Source: Paramoeba atlantica (taxonomy: Eukaryota; Protista; Discosea). From it: a stretch of DNA of 64,000 nt. Where the stretch lies: NCBI GenBank assembly GCA_977017575.1, contig CDRNVI010000007.1, positions 248,001 to 312,000 of the forward strand. The letters run 5' to 3'. Positions within the stretch are counted from its first letter, which is position 1; the number at the start of each line of letters is the position of its first letter. The position numbers and the translations under genes were made by a program. The notes beneath the pieces were generated by a model. The model saw nothing but the letters and a program-made list of their open reading frames with translations. It searched no databases and was not told the origin of the DNA. Below are positions 7,983 to 36,598 of this stretch, in pieces.

Positions 7983-8050
7983 AAAAATTGGTGAATTTTT
8001 TATTGTGCAACAATTTCAAAAGTTGCACAACAAAAAGTTCACAAATTTTT
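7983..8050. repeat. Imperfect 29-bp-arm palindrome; one arm also copied at 7492-7520
   Basis: aaaaattggtgaattttttattgtgcaac - 10 nt - gttgcacaacaaaaagttcacaaattttt (3 mismatches). The 7492-7520 copy is inverted relative to 8022-8050 and may be the TIR of a further nested element. Confidence 0.7.
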
Positions 8051-13711: not shown

Positions 13712-14095
13712 CTGCAATTAGGTATTAGCAAGCTGTTTTAGCTTTATGATGCGGCTTCTTTTGCTTCTTCCTTTAAGCAGTCACCCAAACACGCATCGAA
13801 ATTTCCCGTTTTTTTATCTTAAGGCATACGGTATTCCTTTTCTTCGGTTATATGGGCGAAAGATAACACACTTTTTTTATTCCTGAAGACGAGTATAGTC
13901 GAGCTCTTTCTGTTTTTTACACATGTCACAAAAACTACATTTTGACTCTCCCCTACTTGATCTCTTTTTTGTGTCTTCTCCACCAAACATACGTTTCCCG
14001 AAACACTTCTTATTTTGCTTAGATTATTATCCTATTCTCTCCATCGTACTCTGCTCAAAGAGCACAGTACCATTCTTCCATGAACTAACAATCCC

Positions 14096-15718
14096 ATGTT
14101 ATTACGCTCCGGTGTGTTTCACCTTCCCAAGAGTGCCTACGACCTGCTGGTCATCGGTGGCGGGAGTGGGGGGGTGGCCTGTGCGACCCAGGCGGCCAAA
14201 CTCGGCGCCTCAGTGGCGCTGGTCGACTACGTCCCCCCGAGTCCCTACGGCACCTCCTGGGGTCTCGGCGGCACCTGTGTCAACGTTGGCTGCATCCCGA
14301 AGAAATTGTTTCATGTTGCCGCGCAGCAGGGTGAGATCCTTTCGCACACGGCACCGTATTTTGGCTGGGGTTTGTGTAATTCCGAAAAGGATAGTGTTCC
14401 GAGATATCGAATGCAGTGGAGCACACTTCGAGAGAATGTCACCAATTACATACGCTCGCTGAATTTTAGTACCCGAGTGGCGTGTCAGGAGTTAAACGTG
14501 GATTATGTGAATGCCAGAGCGTGGGTTACGGGGGAACACGGCCACGGGGCTTGTGTGGCGGTGAGGTGTACGGACCCCGATAGCTCCGAGAGCTCTACGA
14601 CCATGCATGCTCGTCACGTGGTGGTGGCGACAGGGGGACGGCCGCAGTATCCCTCGATTCCGGGGGCCCAACGTTTTGGCATCACCTCCGATGATTTGTT
14701 TTGGTTGAACAAAGACCCAGGAAAGGTCGTGGTGGTGGGGGCAGGATACATTGCACTGGAGTGTGCTGGATTTCTAGGGAGCTTCGCGAAGTACGCATCT
14801 CATGAAGGGGAAAGGCCGTTGAACCGGCCCTCCGTGTTGGTTCGCTCTACCCCGCTGCGTGGTTTTGACAAGGACGCTGTGGTCAGGGTCGTACAGTCCA
14901 TGGCGGACTCAGTCGATTTCGTATACGACCAACCAAAGGAATTAGTACGTGTGGAATCGAATGTTGCATCAAATTCTCCAAAGCTTCGATTGCATACTAT
15001 GAAGGGCGGTGTTATGGACTGTGATACGGTTCTGTTTGCGATGGGACGCCGCCCTCAAACTACGGGGTTGGGTTTCGACACGTTGGGCGTGAAAATCGAT
15101 CCGAGCACACATCATATTATTACCGATGAATTTGCGAAGACCTCACACCCTCAGGTGTACGCCATTGGAGATGTCGTTCGTGGAGGTGCGGAACTTACCC
15201 CAGTCGCCATACGCTCGGGTCGAACACTGGCGAACAATCTGTTTTCAGAACGAGCCCGGGAGACGGTACACTTTTTTGCTCAAGCCATGCCCACAACCGT
15301 ATTCACACCTTTGGAGTACGGTCGCATTGGCCCGAGTGAGGAACAAGCGTGTGCGCTCTATCCTGAAAAACAAATCGAAGTCTATCACACTGCCTTTTGC
15401 CCCCTTGAGTGGACGCTACCCGGCCTCCCACGTGACTTGTGCTTTCTCAAAGTCATCACACGGCGAGATCTCGATGATCCTTTGGATGCAGACAACGCCC
15501 GAGGGAGGGATACGAATGAAACCGTCATTGGTTGGCACCTTACATGTCCCCATGCGGGGGAGATTACGCAAGGCATAGCTGTTGCCATGCACGCCGGGTT
15601 GACGCTACGAACACTGCGGCAAACGATGGGCATTCATCCTACCATGGCGGAGTGTATAGGCAGCCTTGTGCGAAAACGAGATTTTCCTACCCCAAAGGTC
15701 CCGGGATGCTGAGGGTAG
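14096..15718 (+). CDS. TXNRD: High-Mr (animal-type) thioredoxin reductase, selenoprotein with C-terminal Gly-Cys-Sec-Gly; UGA at 15710-15712 recoded, true stop TAG 15716-15718
   Basis: Motifs: FAD-binding GGGSGG, redox centre WGLGGTCVNVGCIPKKL, NADPH GAGYIALECAG, ELTPVAI, PTTVFTPLEYG, GIHPTMAE. The 3' end reads ccg gga tgc TGA ggg tag = P-G-C-U-G-stop. A SECIS follows. Confidence 0.93.
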
Positions 15719-15750
15719 GGAAGGGAATGTGAGCCGTCACTCCTTCGCTC

Positions 15751-15820
15751 CATTGGGTTCTTCTTGTGAAGTTGTGTGCCTAAACCTTTAGGTGGCGCAT
15801 AATGGATTTTGAACCGAATG
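15751..15820 (+). promoter_or_regulatory. Eukaryotic SECIS element (form 2, GUGA core) in the TrxR 3' UTR
   Basis: Helix I cattgggttc/gaaccgaatg pairs 9/10. Core GUGAA (15766-70) / GGAU (15804-07). Helix II guugugugcc (15771-80) / ggcgcauaau (15794-803) pairs 10/10 including GU. Unpaired AAA at 15782-84, then a ccu-uua-gg(u) ministem. Confidence 0.9.
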
Positions 15821-15991
15821 ATGTGGTAGTGACGACGAACACTGTAGTGCGGTTAGATAATGGTAACAAAGTGGTAAATTTGGTTTTAGATAAAAGATAA
15901 TTCCTTAAAAAACTTTAACTTGTCACACCTATTTACCACACTCATTTCTCATCAAAAACATATTATCTACTGGGTAGTATCTACTTATTTT

Positions 15992-30352: not shown

Positions 30353-32023
30353 ATGTTTGCGGAGGAACGTTCCCAATTCGTACGCGAAGTTATAGGCTTT
30401 AAAGGAAACGTAGAAGTACACAGCAAAAAGCTTATTGCAACTGATGAAGAGTTTAATAGCTCTACGAACTATGTTCTTATAGGAACGAAAAAGAATTTGT
30501 GCGAAGAATCTTTCTTTGCATCTTTGCCAGCATTTATACAGGAGGAAAAGGATCTGTACACGCACATCGTTCACAAGACTGAGGTAAAATCTTCTCAAAA
30601 ATTCTACTTGAAAAAGAACCATGAATCATTCATATGTGTAACAATCCTTTGTATTTCCGATGAAAGCTCGAGAAATAATTGTCCTTCACGTCCTGATATT
30701 GTCACTTCCCTCCTCAGGTCATCGAATGTAGGAGATTCCGGCACGAATGGAACTTCTTCTGAAGTTTCTTGTGCACCAAAAAATTGTGTTGTACTTTGTG
30801 CCTGTATAGTCCCTCACTTGTCCGAAGACTCTCAAACAACGCCGTACCTCAGTCTTGTATGTGCCGTGGCGAAGAGTTTCTCGCGATTTTCTGTCAAAGG
30901 TAAAGAGAACGCTTTTCTAGAAAAGAAATCTCCAGCACGCGTGCTACTAGGCCTTATTAATATTGGGAACTCCACGTCAGCGGAGGAAAGCACTCCGAAC
31001 TGTGCTGCACTGAATCACGCCGCGTATGCATGCCAATTATGCATGATTCTAGGTGATGCTCCCCCCAATTTACTTGATACAACGACATTCTCTGAAATCA
31101 TACAAGGCCTCTCCGGGACGCATGGATTTCACGTGAGGCAAAACATTGCGGGGGAGGACTTAATTCCAGCGAAGCTCACCGGGCTGTACAACGTAGGGAA
31201 GGCCGGCACAGAGCCCCCACGGTTTCTGGTTCTGGAACATCAAGGAGGGGAGGAATCTGAAAAGCCTGTGGTGTTCGTTGGCAAAGGCATCATATACGAC
31301 GCAGGTGGATTGGCAATTAAGCCTGCTGCAAATATGGTCAACATGAAATGCGACATGTGTGGAGCGGCTGCTGCGTTTTGTGCGTTTCTAGCAGCTGCAC
31401 TGAGCAAATCGTCGCAGCGAGCCTACTCTGTACTTTCTTTGGCAGAAAATGCAGTGGGGCCTCTTTCCTATCGCAACGATGACATTATCAAACTGCATTG
31501 TGGTCTCAGCGTGGAGGTAAATAACACCGACGCGGAGGGAAGAATTGTACTTGCGGACGCCATATCCTACGCAACAACGTATCTTGACCCTTCCTTGGTC
31601 ATCGACCTGGCTACGCTAACGGGCGCTCAGAGTTTTGCTACAGGTGTCAAACATAGCGGAATCTACACAAATTTGGACACAACAGAACGAGATGTTTTTC
31701 GTGCTGGAAGACAGAGTGGAGATTTGTGCTTCCCATTTTTGTACTGCCCAGAGTTCCTGGACGATCAGTTTGACAGCAAAGTTGCAGATCTGAAAAACAG
31801 CGTTAAAGATCGTGCTACAGCATCATCGGCTGCTGCAGGTCGATTCTTAGAAAAGGCTTTGAGCAAACAATACAAAGGTCCCTTTGTGCATCTAGATATT
31901 GCAGCTCCAGCTTTTCGTTCCGATCGAGCCACTGGGTATGGTGTGGCCCTGTTGCTAGAGTTGTGCTTTAAAAAGGATTTTTCGAATTTAATGCGACCCG
32001 CCAAGATGTTGAAAAGGTCTTAG
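30353..32023 (+). CDS. M17 leucyl aminopeptidase family, NPEPL1-like
   Basis: VFVGKGIIYDAGGLAIK, MKCDMCGAAA, VEVNNTDAEGRIVLADA, DLATLTGAQ, VHLDIAAP. Confidence 0.92.
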   Translation: MFAEERSQFVREVIGFKGNVEVHSKKLIATDEEFNSSTNYVLIGTKKNLCEESFFASLPAFIQEEKDLYTHIVHKTEVKSSQKFYLKKNHESFICVTILCISDESSRNNCPSRPDIVTSLLRSSNVGDSGTNGTSSEVSCAPKNCVVLCACIVPHLSEDSQTTPYLSLVCAVAKSFSRFSVKGKENAFLEKKSPARVLLGLINIGNSTSAEESTPNCAALNHAAYACQLCMILGDAPPNLLDTTTFSEIIQGLSGTHGFHVRQNIAGEDLIPAKLTGLYNVGKAGTEPPRFLVLEHQGGEESEKPVVFVGKGIIYDAGGLAIKPAANMVNMKCDMCGAAAAFCAFLAAALSKSSQRAYSVLSLAENAVGPLSYRNDDIIKLHCGLSVEVNNTDAEGRIVLADAISYATTYLDPSLVIDLATLTGAQSFATGVKHSGIYTNLDTTERDVFRAGRQSGDLCFPFLYCPEFLDDQFDSKVADLKNSVKDRATASSAAAGRFLEKALSKQYKGPFVHLDIAAPAFRSDRATGYGVALLLELCFKKDFSNLMRPAKMLKRS

Positions 32024-32578
32024 CTCTAGCACGAGAGGCTTTTTTACAATCGCTTGCTTCTTTTTTATCGAAATCGAAAGTTCCAAATATTATGAATCGT
32101 AAGTGTGCGAAGCACAGACGTGTAATTCCACGTAGGTTTCATATTCTAAAATGAGGTTAAAACGATTTGGAGCTGGACGAAGTCGATGCATCTCCTGGCA
32201 GTTTTGATAGAATCTGTTCTGATATTAGGTTCAACTTTCAAATATTGACACATGGCTTAACGTGCTAATGTGTTCTTTAAGAGCTATTTATATTCAAGTG
32301 TTTTAATAAGCAGTACAGAAAAAACTGCGAGTTTCGAAATTATTGTAATATTCTTGTAATGACTTAAAGAACTTAATGTCCTTAAAGAACATCCACGAAA
32401 GAGTTTGGAATGTAAAAATGACTGATTTTAAGTGAATGTGTTTCAAAAACAATCAGCGAAACAGTTTCTCTCATCAACTAATTGCAATTTGTTTTATAAA
32501 GTTTTCCAAGCCGCGCATGTTTTCCTGTTAAAGAACGGGCGTGAGGTATCGGACTTTTGGGAACTTTTAAACTTCGAA

Positions 32579-35500
32579 ATGAACGGTGCAATTGAAGTTA
32601 ATGTTACGATTCAAGGAACTGGTGAAAAGAATATCGAATCAAGTTCAAAGACGAACTACATACGGACAACAAAATACACCCTATGGAGCTTTCTTCCTTT
32701 GCAGATATACCACCAGCTATGTATTTTGTCCAATATTTTCTTCTTATTGACTAGTGTTTTAGCTTTTCTTCCCGGTATATCTCCTCTAGATCCTATCACG
32801 GCAACGTTACCGCTTATATTTGTTCTTGTGGTTGCAATTTTGCGAAATGCTTATGAGGAATATCAACGTTACCGAGCAGACAAATCAGCCAATTCGGCAC
32901 CCATTTCTCTCTTCTCGCGACAACTTCAGAGCAGTGAAACCGAGTTGAACTTGCCTCTTAATCACAATCTGTATCATGCTTCCTCATCTGATTTGCGGGT
33001 GGGAGACGTCATTCTTCTCCGAAAAAATGGAGAAATTATGGCTGACGTTGCCATGCTTTACTCTTCTGGAAACGATAACATCGCTTATATTGACACATCC
33101 CATTTAGACGGGGAGGCTACAGTTAAGCTTCGCAGAGGAAAAAAGTGGTTTAACGATAAGATGCTTTCGTACTCAAGTAAAATACTCGACGACAATTCAC
33201 ATTCGAATGCAAACAAGGAATACGGGGATTTCCCGACAGAATTACAACTAAAACAGCTTTATGAAGTATTGCACTCATGCTCTATGAGGTTTCGCGTCGA
33301 AGCCCCGAGTCCAACATTAATGTTTTGGAATGGTCTTCTTGAAGCACAAGGTAAAACCTTCTCTCTCACAGTGGAAAATTTGTTATACCGCGGATCTGTT
33401 TTACGGCACACGTCTTGGGTCGTCGGTGTCGTCGTATACACCGGATGGGATACCAAACTGTTCCGAAATCTAAAGCCCTCACGTCCTCCAAAAGTCTCAT
33501 CTCTAGACAAGAAATTAAATTTTACACTTGCATTTATTCTTCTGCTCCATCAAATCTTGCTTACAGCCCTTGCGTTAACTGCCGCAAAGAAGGAGAGTGT
33601 TATGTCAACGAATGCCTGGTATATCTACCCGACGGGTGAGGCACATAATATCATGAATCGAAATGCTTTCGTCGATTTTATTTCCCGATACATGACGTAC
33701 TTTGTGCTTTTGAGTTACATGATACCAGTTTCACTTTTCGTTACCCTCGAAGTATGCAAAGCGGTACAAGGTTATTACATAAATCAAGATCCGGAGTTAT
33801 CATTTTGTGACAAAGTTTCTGGATACACAAGACAATCTCTCGCCCGTACAACGAACCTGAATGAACAGCTCAGTCAAGTTAAGCATGTATTTACGGATAA
33901 GACTGGAACCCTCACTGAAAATGTAATGCATTACGTAGGTGGGACTATTCAAAATGCATATTGCATGGAAACTGTCAGCAGAGCTTCCTCTAGGAGAGAT
34001 ACGAATGATTCTGGAGGACGTTCCCCAGGTGGTTCAGTGCGTTGTCCGGCCAATAATTCCATTCTTATACGTCCTGATAGAAATCTCTCGATAGGAAAGC
34101 TTTTGAGGACTCCAAGCACCTTAAAGCACTCTCCTTTGCCCATGAATGACACGATATTTGAATCTCCAATAAAAATCACGATCGCATGCGAGAGCTTGTA
34201 TTGGCGATCCCTAGCACTCTGCAATCAGGTGCTGCCATTACCAAAGGGATTAAATCGTGCTGTTCTTCAAGAAAACAAGAACTCGTCCTCGCTATCTGAC
34301 AGCCGAATTTTTCGCGCTCTCTTTCGGCTTTGGGATATTTTTCTACAAATAGCATGTGTGAGTACTTACAAGCGCCATGAGGAAACAGTACATCAATCGC
34401 TGCCTTCTACAGAGGATTTAAAGGACGAGCGTTACCCCCGAGAGTTAGCATTTGAGGGGCATTCTCCGGATGAGATAGCGCTAGTCAAAGGAGCGGCTAA
34501 CCATGGCGTAACTCTCATACATCGAGATGAATTTATAAGTACCGTAGCGGTGGAAGCTGGTGAAATTTGGGAGAATTCTCCAGTTTTTGAAGCACATGAA
34601 AAAAGAATTAACGGTCAGATCGAAAGTGCTGCAGCATTCCTTAGCTCGAGTTTTTCATACAAATTTGAAAAGTATGTACGAGTGGCGGAACTTGAGTTTA
34701 CCCCTCAGCGGAAGATGATGTCCACTGTGTTAAGAGACCCGAACGGTCGTCTGATTATGTTTACTAAAGGAGCCGATAGTTCCGTGTTACCGATCATTTT
34801 TCCTTGTGAAAATGAAGAACACCCATCACCACAGGGTAGAGCAATTGACGTAACAAGACAGGCGCTTCATGAATTTGGCACTTGTGGACTCCGAACTTTG
34901 GTTTTCGCATACAAATATCTTGAAGAGGATGATTTTTCTATATGGGATGCCTCCTACCAGGATGCTCTTCAAACACTTGACACTGTAGAGCGTCAAGAAA
35001 AAATAGATCTTTGCTGCAAGAGTCTCGAAAAGGATATGTCATTGCTTGGAACAACGGCAATAGAAGATAGATTACAGGACGGGGTCCCAGAGACAATAAA
35101 ATCTCTAAGGCAAGCAGGAATCGATGTGTGGTTATTGACAGGTGATATGCGTGAAACTGCACTCAATGTAGCATCACAGAGTGGTTTGGTGAATTGGGAA
35201 ACGGACGACATCATTCACGTTGGAGCCGAAAATTCAAAGCACGAAAGCATGTCAAAAAAAATTGAACCGCTTTTGCCGCAAGAAAGAAACGGGAATGAGT
35301 GCTCTTTTGATGGTGTTCAGAAACAATTAGAAGATATTTGCAAGACGTACCCTGTTCGCTCCATAAACAAGTGTCAAATTTACGACGAAAATCTGTCCTA
35401 CGTAGATGACGAGCTGAAGACATGTTTAGGAGGTGTTTGTCTCGTGGTTAATGGACCATCAGTGCAATTTATTATCGAAAATCATTTAAGGCTTCTCCTT

Positions 35501-36598
35501 GACGTGAGCCGCCGTATCAGTTCAGTTGTATGCTGTAGACTAACTCCACTTCAAAAATCCAGTCTTGTCCGTGCAATCCAAAGAGGATTACATACGCCAG
35601 CACAAGGAAAACGTAGATTTTCTCTCGATCAGACTTGCGAACCTTCTAGTACCCCTTGTCCCCTTCATTGGCATCTATTCAAGAGGTTCATGAATCGAAT
35701 TAAAAGAATTATTGACCTAATCTTTCTTTATTATGAGCGTCATATTACAAGTTCTGACGTCACAGCCATTGCCGTTGGGGATGGCGCCAACGATGTAAGC
35801 ATGATACAAGAAGCCAAGGTTGGCATTGGCATTATGGGTCGTGAAGGTTCACAAGCTGTCTTAGCCTCTGATTATGCACTTCCTCGATTTCGGCACTTGA
35901 AGAGACTTTTGTTCGTACATGGTCGCTACGCGCTGTATCGCAACGCTACCTGTATTGGGTACTCTTTCTACAAAAACCTTCTACTTTCTTTCTGTCAAAT
36001 TTTTTATGCGTGGTTTGCAGCATGTAGCGGGACGACAATGTTTGACTCGTGGCTTCTCGTCTTCTTTAATCTTTTCTTTACCTCTCTCATTCCTCTTTCT
36101 ATGGGAATGTGACAAAAGGATCACCCTGAAGTTCTCCTTGAAAGTTACCCAAGCTTGTACGTTCCTCTGCGGGAAAGGCAGCAATACTTTAATATCGAAT
36201 CTATGATTCTATTCTGGTTATCAACCGCAGTTTTTCAAGCGCTGGTTGTGTTTGGTCTATGCTACGCTTTCATGCAACATGATGGCTTGGACTCGGCCCA
36301 TTCGTTGACATTGCAACATTATGGAACTATGGTCTTTTGCACGCTACTTGTGCTAATCCATATCCAAGCCCTTACTTACGCCAGAAAACAAGATAAAAAG
36401 CATGTCTATACGGTAATAGGAAGTTTCTTAATTTGTATAGCTGTGCTTTTGTTGTACACGAATATGCCAGTTATGACACACACCGCCAGTTTTGTATCCA
36501 TTCTCACACAACTCTCGCGACCTTTTTCAATGGTCCCATTTCTTACAACAGTACTAGGCGCACTTTTAGTTGTATTTCTCGGACCTCATTTGACATAA
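32579..36598 (+). CDS. P4-type ATPase (phospholipid flippase) interrupted by an in-frame TGA at 36110-36112
   Basis: NYIRTTKYT, HLDGEA, YMIPVSLFVTLE, TDKTGTLTEN, YEGHSPDE-like FEGHSPDE, FTKGADS, WLLTGD, AVGDGANDV, GREGSQA. The frame continues past the TGA for 161 codons of membrane helices (QKDHPEVLLESYPSLY...). Confidence 0.85.

Follow-up and report, generated by a model that had tools for sequence, protein, structure and literature searches.

A thioredoxin reductase gene with a Cys-UGA-Gly-stop end

The stretch analyzed here, called the window throughout, comprises 64,000 nucleotides (nt) of contig CDRNVI010000007.1 (positions 248,001 to 312,000; assembly GCA_977017575.1, listed as Paramoeba atlantica). 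Its plus strand carries at 14096..15709 a thioredoxin reductase (TrxR) gene, recognized with Pfam, PDB and TIGR01438, that has 538 codons up to Cys538. The open reading frame (ORF) finder terminates this ORF (14096-15712) at TGA 15710-15712, and the DNA of 15701-15718 reads CCG GGA TGC TGA GGG TAG, i.e., Pro-Gly-Cys-UGA-Gly-stop. The codons GGA TGC TGA GGG TAG (15704-15718) follow the class I TrxR C-terminal pattern GGN TGY TGA GGN stop. A preliminary description of this DNA, made from the letters alone, had read the end of the gene as Gly-Cys-Sec-Gly-stop (Sec, selenocysteine), with the ORF track stopping at the TGA, and both the sequence and the ORF finder agree with it. Very probably, the correct annotation of window 14096-15718 is a predicted selenoprotein of 540 residues, in which the UGA (15710..15712) would be Sec539, aligned with the Sec position of TXNRD2 and flanked by the same Cys-TGA-GGN-stop context in eight loci, and GGG TAG (15713..15718) would supply Gly540 and the true stop.

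The expected motifs of the enzyme are all intact on the same strand. Preceding the flavin adenine dinucleotide (FAD) fold is a basic N-terminal extension, MLLRSGVFHLPK (14096..14131), a candidate mitochondrial presequence; the PDB alignment starts after it, at residue 13. Alignment with TrxRs placed the FAD-binding motif GGGSGG at residues 21-26 (14156..14173) and the nicotinamide adenine dinucleotide phosphate (NADPH)-binding motif GAGYIALECAG at residues 215-225 (14738..14770). The redox-active disulfide motif CVNVGC (Cys61/Cys66; 14276..14293) is invariant in 14 of 14 aligned TrxRs, and HPTMAE, containing the His-Glu catalytic dyad of the interface domain (residues 514-519; 15635..15652), lies in a GIHPTxAE segment kept in all of them. 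The tail from HPT to the UGA measures 26 residues, compared to 27 in mammals.

Profile and structure searches assigned the ORF to the high-molecular-weight (high-Mr) TrxR family. Pfam detected PF07992 Pyr_redox_2 (4e-51), PF00070 and PF02852 Pyr_redox_dim (6e-19). The best PDB match was mouse TXNRD2 (1zdl, E = 8e-115), extending from residue 13 to the last Gly-Cys, with schistosome thioredoxin-glutathione reductases and TXNRD1 also near the top and glutathione reductase (~1e-60) and trypanothione reductase (~1e-55) well behind TXNRD2. Likewise, NCBIfam TIGR01438 scored 458.6 bits, whereas glutathione reductase models reached at most 327.6 and the trypanothione reductase model 201.6; the curated cut-off of TIGR01438 is 475.85, and the query is divergent and lacks the final two residues. 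Altogether, the comparisons identify a complete high-Mr TrxR gene, short only of the predicted Sec-Gly cut off by the ORF finder. Upstream of it, a two-codon ORF (ATG AAC TAA, 14081-14089) lies in frame, 15 nt 5' of the TrxR ATG, in a pyrimidine-rich leader.

A SECIS element downstream of the UGA

A form-2 selenocysteine insertion sequence (SECIS) element occupies 15750..15822 of the plus strand, as indicated by Rfam RF00031, by its fold and by covariation in related genes. Helix I pairs 15751-15760 with 15811-15820 (9 base pairs [bp] and one G.G mismatch). The 5' core GUGA-A (15766-15770) stands opposite the 3' core GGAU (15804-15807), together a kink-turn core with presumptive non-Watson-Crick geometry. 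Helix II pairs 15771-15780 with 15794-15803 (10 of 10 pairs, wobbles included), and an unpaired UAAA (15781-15784) leads into an apical mini-stem (15785-15792). Between the core and the AAA lie 12 nt (AGUUGUGUGCCU). The element begins 40 nt past the UGA and ends about 170 nt short of the ATG of the next gene on the same strand, with its core beginning 56 nt from the first UGA base. The preliminary description had listed these parts (helix I 9/10, GUGAA/GGAU, helix II 10/10, AAA bulge and apical ministem), accurately throughout, and its distance of about 54 nt is close to the measured one.

That description had also proposed a covariance-model check of the downstream region. Rfam SECIS_1 (RF00031) matched 15756-15815 over model positions 1-64 of 64, with 34.8 bits and an E-value of 2e-5. 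An Rfam scan of the whole window at the gathering threshold (score 35) was empty because this match is 0.2 bits short. The segment 15750-15822 folds at -26.6 kcal/mol, with a z-score of -4.5 against dinucleotide shuffles, and is the sole credible SECIS-like match in the 64-kb window; the stem-loop is thus more than a chance structure. Other weak matches in the window to the covariance models R1 and R2 described below (7985-8049 on both strands, 30389-30437, 32049-32112 and others) were rejected as being without core and helix II, and the candidate at 7985-8049 is AT-rich (GC fraction, 0.25) and matches both strands. A GUGA core is, as the preliminary description had said, a known variant: green algae and the sponge Amphimedon typically have elements of the GUGA_AA kind (PMC3473315).

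Conservation of the UGA-Gly-stop end and the SECIS element in related loci

The sequence Cys-TGA-GGN-stop is retained in 8 of 8 fetched loci (L001, L002, L003, L004, L006, L007, L009 and L010), with protein identities to the window of 44-99%. After the Cys codon, TGA GGG TAG follows in L001 (99% identity); TGA GGA TAA in L002 (56%, syntenic), L006 (51%) and L009, from a Perkinsela relative; TGA GGA TAG in L003 (44%) and in L004 of Perkinsela (44%); TGA GGC TAA in L007, of clade B in the tree described below; and TGA GGC TAG in L010, which is unplaced. The Gly codon thus differs synonymously among loci (GGG/GGA/GGC), so it behaves as a translated codon. As the preliminary description had anticipated for standard annotation, public protein calls for the window TrxR and for eight kinetoplastid-type relatives, Perkinsela included, each end at the Cys, two residues short of the predicted end.

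To search for the element in relatives, five loci were scanned unfiltered with a covariance model (R1) whose only source was the window element, and its best non-self matches sit exactly in the 3' untranslated regions (UTRs) of L002 (E = 0.011), L003 (0.41) and L006 (0.86). In the resulting four-sequence alignment, 98.6% of cells are in standard pairs and 15 of 21 pairs are altered on both sides; none of 500 shuffles matched the observed values, and sliding the partners by 1-3 columns left 27-59% paired. For the five candidate elements, a covariance-model alignment was used instead of one by MAFFT, which is not structure-aware. In constrained folds of the relatives, helix I and an internal loop precede a G-N-G-A-A...G-G-A-N core, which leads into helix II (9-11 bp) and unpaired, A-rich sequence; the distance from the core to this sequence is 11-13 nt, as measured in L002, L003, L004 and L006. 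Across the prokinetoplastid-type TrxR genes, 40-104 nt separate the UGA from the base of the element, and the core is GUGA in four of six 3' UTRs.

The remaining elements deserve separate description. The candidate in L002 (4689-4761) has a GCGA core, the usually invariant U being replaced; its contig has about 2x coverage, and a sequencing error is possible. The candidate in L009 (3130-3185), on a 145x contig, has a GGGA core with a strong helix II and a weak helix I. In Perkinsela, the deposited TrxR ends in ...Gly-Asn-Cys, the DNA continues TGA GGA TAG (L004 4540-4700; LFNC01000462.1), and some 70-140 nt farther on lies a candidate stem-loop of the form GUGA-A...U-GGAU. Model R2, made from the four clade-A elements, misses the clade-B candidates in L004 and L009, and the Rfam E-value scan of L004 gave no SECIS_1 match; both candidates rest on constrained folds and inspection. 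From these features, the deposited Perkinsela "thioredoxin reductase" is predicted to be a selenoprotein likewise truncated at its Sec.

Two prokinetoplastid TrxR clades and the possible location of the enzyme

A tree of 51 high-Mr TrxRs (quick search, midpoint root) placed the window protein in clade A, which has 100% support and six members (window, L002, L003, L006, PhM_4_a and PhF_6, with metagenome sequences among them) and lies outside all animal sequences. Clade B, also outside the animal clades, contains Perkinsela, P0024 and PhM_4_b. From this tree, the window TrxR appears to belong to a prokinetoplastid-specific clade, neither orthologous to TXNRD1/2/3 nor derived from an animal gene. 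The term "animal-type," used in the preliminary description, therefore holds as a family label, in keeping with TIGR01438 and the PDB match to TXNRD2, and fails as a statement of TXNRD1/2/3 orthology.

Both clades occur together in two cases. The Perkinsela-like ENA sample ERZ25071330 has clade-A L003 on a 630-kb contig and clade-B L009 on a 999-kb contig, each with Cys-TGA-Gly-stop, and PhM_4 also carries both, which suggests that the A/B duplication predates these lineages. Among the matches listed, there was no clade-A gene for Perkinsela CCAP 1560/4. A Perkinsela protein query for a clade-B paralogue of the window organism gave no match assignable to the same assembly, P0008 being from another sample.

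The two clades also differ at their N termini, and the preliminary description had taken the MLLRS start to suggest mitochondrial import. Short basic leaders are found in four of six clade-A proteins (MLLRS.., MLRRV.., MFRSY.. and MFRRC.., all starting M-[L/F]-[L/R]-R and free of acidic residues), whereas the clade-B leaders of PhM_4_b and P0024 are acidic and non-basic. Very short presequences are known for kinetoplastid mitochondrial flavoenzymes, which the clade-A leader resembles. Judged by this short basic N terminus, the window TrxR is only slightly more likely than not to be a mitochondrial enzyme. A cytosolic enzyme whose 12-residue N terminus is merely a short leader is a serious contender, given that twelve residues are very short for a presequence and that the clade-A members P0004 and PhF_6 begin directly at the FAD fold; the difference in leaders between the clades and the short presequences of the mitochondrial flavoenzymes speak against it.

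The UGA is very likely decoded as selenocysteine

Since Cys-UGA-Gly-stop is kept, a SECIS element is present in relatives and UGA is elsewhere an ordinary stop, we consider it highly probable that UGA 15710-15712 specifies Sec. A general reassignment of UGA was rejected on stop-codon usage in the window, where TGA terminates eight further long ORFs and is absent in frame from 14,845 long-ORF codons. The SECIS element, 40-110 nt downstream of the UGA and with a GUGA...GGAU kink-turn core, would recruit the Sec-specific elongation machinery and so recode the UGA, and translation would end after one further Gly at the UAG. The product would be a homodimeric flavoenzyme of 540 residues. By the established chemistry of the high-Mr family, electrons would pass from NADPH via FAD to the Cys61-Cys66 disulfide of CVNVGC, then to the selenenylsulfide formed by Cys538 and Sec539 in the other subunit's flexible C-terminal tail, which would reduce thioredoxin.

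Several observations weigh against Sec decoding. There are zero tRNA genes in the 64-kb window, hence no tRNA-Sec there. The SECIS_1 score of the window element is 0.2 bits under the gathering score, the Rfam E-value scans gave no SECIS_1 match in L002 and L003, and the match in L006 reached only 16.6 bits. The covariation alignment consists of only four sequences and was fitted to the model's own structure. Moreover, extension of the 3' UTR to 15822 is predicted from genomic DNA, and the 56-nt spacing from UGA to core is near the lower end of the minimal distance determined for mammalian Dio1, 51-111 nt (PMC3316567).

The better of the alternatives, in our judgment very improbable, is that UGA 15710 is a true stop, the protein ends in ...Pro-Gly-Cys and the hairpin is an unrelated 3' UTR structure. 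It would fit with TGA being the commonest ordinary stop in the window (9 of 22 long ORFs), with the marginally subthreshold Rfam match and with public gene calls that all terminate at the UGA. It would leave unaccounted for a Gly codon and second stop after the TGA in eight loci down to 44% identity, with synonymous changes in the Gly codon, and a covarying SECIS-shaped element downstream in the related genes. In addition, mammalian TrxR without Sec-Gly is nearly inactive towards thioredoxin.

Even less probable is readthrough of the UGA without Sec, for example by a near-cognate Trp or Cys tRNA, or as a leaky stop of this organism. Some readthrough may indeed occur, as the coding frame of a P4-ATPase gene in the window contains a TGA (36110-36112) that lacks a SECIS and beyond which the frame stays open and looks homologous. 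In TrxR, in contrast, the UGA sits exactly at the Sec of the Gly-Cys-Sec-Gly redox center, and the SECIS downstream of it has the expected core, spacing and AAA motif; the P4-ATPase TGA has none. Altogether, the observations favor decoding of the TrxR UGA as Sec.

The locus belongs to a prokinetoplastid genome

All 22 long ORFs checked in the window are on the plus strand and have no apparent introns. They include genes for a gamma-tubulin complex protein, TrxR, coatomer alpha, WDR3, an M17 aminopeptidase, a P4-ATPase, MMS19, CPSF73 and an NPC1-like protein. This layout is that of a kinetoplastid gene array. The gene for the gamma-tubulin complex protein lies upstream of TrxR in the window and likewise in L001 and L002.

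CPSF73 was used for a single-gene placement of the genome by quick search. Its closest relatives are a metagenome protein (55% identity), PhM_4, a free-living prokinetoplastid (51%), and Perkinsela sp. CCAP 1560/4 (49%), with Trypanosoma at 45-46%, and in the tree the window falls in a clade with PhM_4, Perkinsela and metagenome sequences (100% support in the Shimodaira-Hasegawa-like approximate likelihood ratio test [SH-aLRT]) that is sister to Neobodo plus trypanosomatids. These identities and the tree identify the genome, as far as one gene can tell, as prokinetoplastid, i.e., of an early-branching kinetoplastid that is distinct from Perkinsela CCAP 1560/4 and is not a trypanosomatid. The kinetoplastid-like genome of the preliminary description is borne out, and the contig is not from a non-euglenozoan, the case which that description had named as removing the novelty.

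Least probable of all is a foreign origin of TrxR, by contamination from an animal or the host amoeba or by recent horizontal transfer of an animal TXNRD2. Mammalian TXNRD2 is the best match of solved structure, yet TrxR is part of an intron-less gene array on one strand and shares its synteny with L001 and L002. The window CPSF73 joins Perkinsela and PhM_4 with an SH-aLRT support of 100%, and TrxR itself forms a 100%-supported clade with PhM_4 and PhF_6 far from animal TXNRD2. On the two trees and synteny, an animal- or host-derived gene was rejected.

A near-identical copy of the TrxR locus is present in ENA assembly ERZ24900291. Window 14096-15900 and L001 3001-4805 differ by substitutions at 11 sites of the TrxR coding sequence, of which 6 alter an amino acid, and the 190 nt that follow the UGA are free of substitutions; from 15.7 to 40 kb, the offset of the second assembly relative to the window changes by 26 nt. 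The substitutions and the shift point to two haplotypes or strains instead of one assembly copied.

The P4-ATPase (flippase) ORF spans window 32432-36598 and is broken by the in-frame TGA at 36110-36112, with …SLIPLSMGM before it and QKDHPEVLLESYPSLY… after it. The frame stays open for 162 codons past the TGA, Pfam PhoLip_ATPase_C was matched at 1-84 of 251 before it, and the TGA is also present in the second assembly (L008 5885-5887). Covariance-model scans of the window found no SECIS near this TGA, which may represent programmed readthrough, a fixed nonsense allele or a split gene.

Comparison with known systems

Trypanothione reductase, glutathione reductase and TrxR have been searched across Euglenozoa by Butenko et al. 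(2020), who found TrxR missing from trypanosomatids alone among the Euglenozoa they covered and recorded its presence elsewhere with no mention of selenocysteine (PMC7052976). Because TrxR is already reported in all non-trypanosomatid kinetoplastids, its presence here is expected and the novelty modest: the gene adds a divergent TrxR to an enzyme family and a recoding mechanism that are both known, and the enzyme had already been published for its lineage. The preliminary description had set the gene against the lack of TrxR in trypanosomatids. That lack is real for trypanosomatids, and the view of it stays intact; it does not serve as a premise for a prokinetoplastid, and the supposed contradiction with known biology falls away (PMC7052976). 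In the full-text literature searched, which omits most subscription journals, no paper on a Sec-TrxR or its SECIS in non-trypanosomatid kinetoplastids was found.

The gain lies first in the correction of a systematic annotation error, the window TrxR, its close relatives and the Perkinsela deposit being predicted to be recorded two residues short, which makes them look inactive on paper. The TrxR reported in non-trypanosomatid kinetoplastids would also prove to be of the Sec type, and TrxR would join a kinetoplastid selenoprotein list limited, in the literature searched, to SelK, SelT and SelTryp, which make up the trypanosomatid selenoproteome (Lobanov et al., 2006, PMC1557815; PMC12153298). 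The small set of compact, covarying GUGA-core SECIS elements may be of use in working out SECIS rules in Euglenozoa, and the factor that binds them.

A broader picture is tentative and, taken whole, unlikely: prokinetoplastids would have a two-paralogue Sec-TrxR system beside trypanothione, with clade A probably mitochondrial and clade B probably cytosolic, and UGA-proximal SECIS elements with the core GUGA and perhaps GCGA or GGGA. If it were true, the kinetoplastid SECIS-binding factor would have a relaxed or different core specificity, and the loss of TrxR in trypanosomatids would have accompanied the shrinkage of a much larger ancestral selenoproteome.

Among characterized enzymes, TXNRD2 (PDB 1zdl/3dgz), of the high-Mr Sec-TrxR family, resembles the window TrxR in domain order, CVNVGC, the His-Glu dyad, the Gly-Cys-Sec-Gly end, an HPT-to-Sec tail equal within one residue, UGA as the penultimate codon and a SECIS in the 3' UTR. 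The window protein differs in its identity of only about 42-45%, lineage-specific insertions near residues 228-245 and 470-489, and a SECIS core that has GUGA in place of AUGA, at a distance of only 56 nt from the UGA. The TrxR of Perkinsela sp. CCAP 1560/4 (P0086) and those of PhM_4 and PhF_6 that Butenko et al. (2020) included are of the same Prokinetoplastina lineage and enzyme family, although the Perkinsela protein is a clade-B paralogue with 44% identity and a predicted Asn-Cys-Sec-Gly end in place of Gly-Cys-Sec-Gly.

The trypanosomatid selenoproteins (PMC1557815) share with the window gene the UGA/SECIS mode of recoding, intron-less genes and misannotation at the UGA. Trypanosomatids, however, lack TrxR, and their UGA-to-SECIS distances are about 200-1100 nt, whereas in the prokinetoplastid TrxR genes the element's base lies 40-104 nt from the UGA. 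As in the GUGA_AA elements of green algae and Amphimedon (PMC3473315), a G replaces the A before the core UGA in the prokinetoplastid elements, and the variant seems to be typical of lineages, not of single genes. Unlike the GUGA_AA systems, the prokinetoplastid set may also vary the next base, with L002 (GCGA) and L009 (GGGA) as candidates. SECIS elements of the GGGA type are known from Toxoplasma and Neospora.

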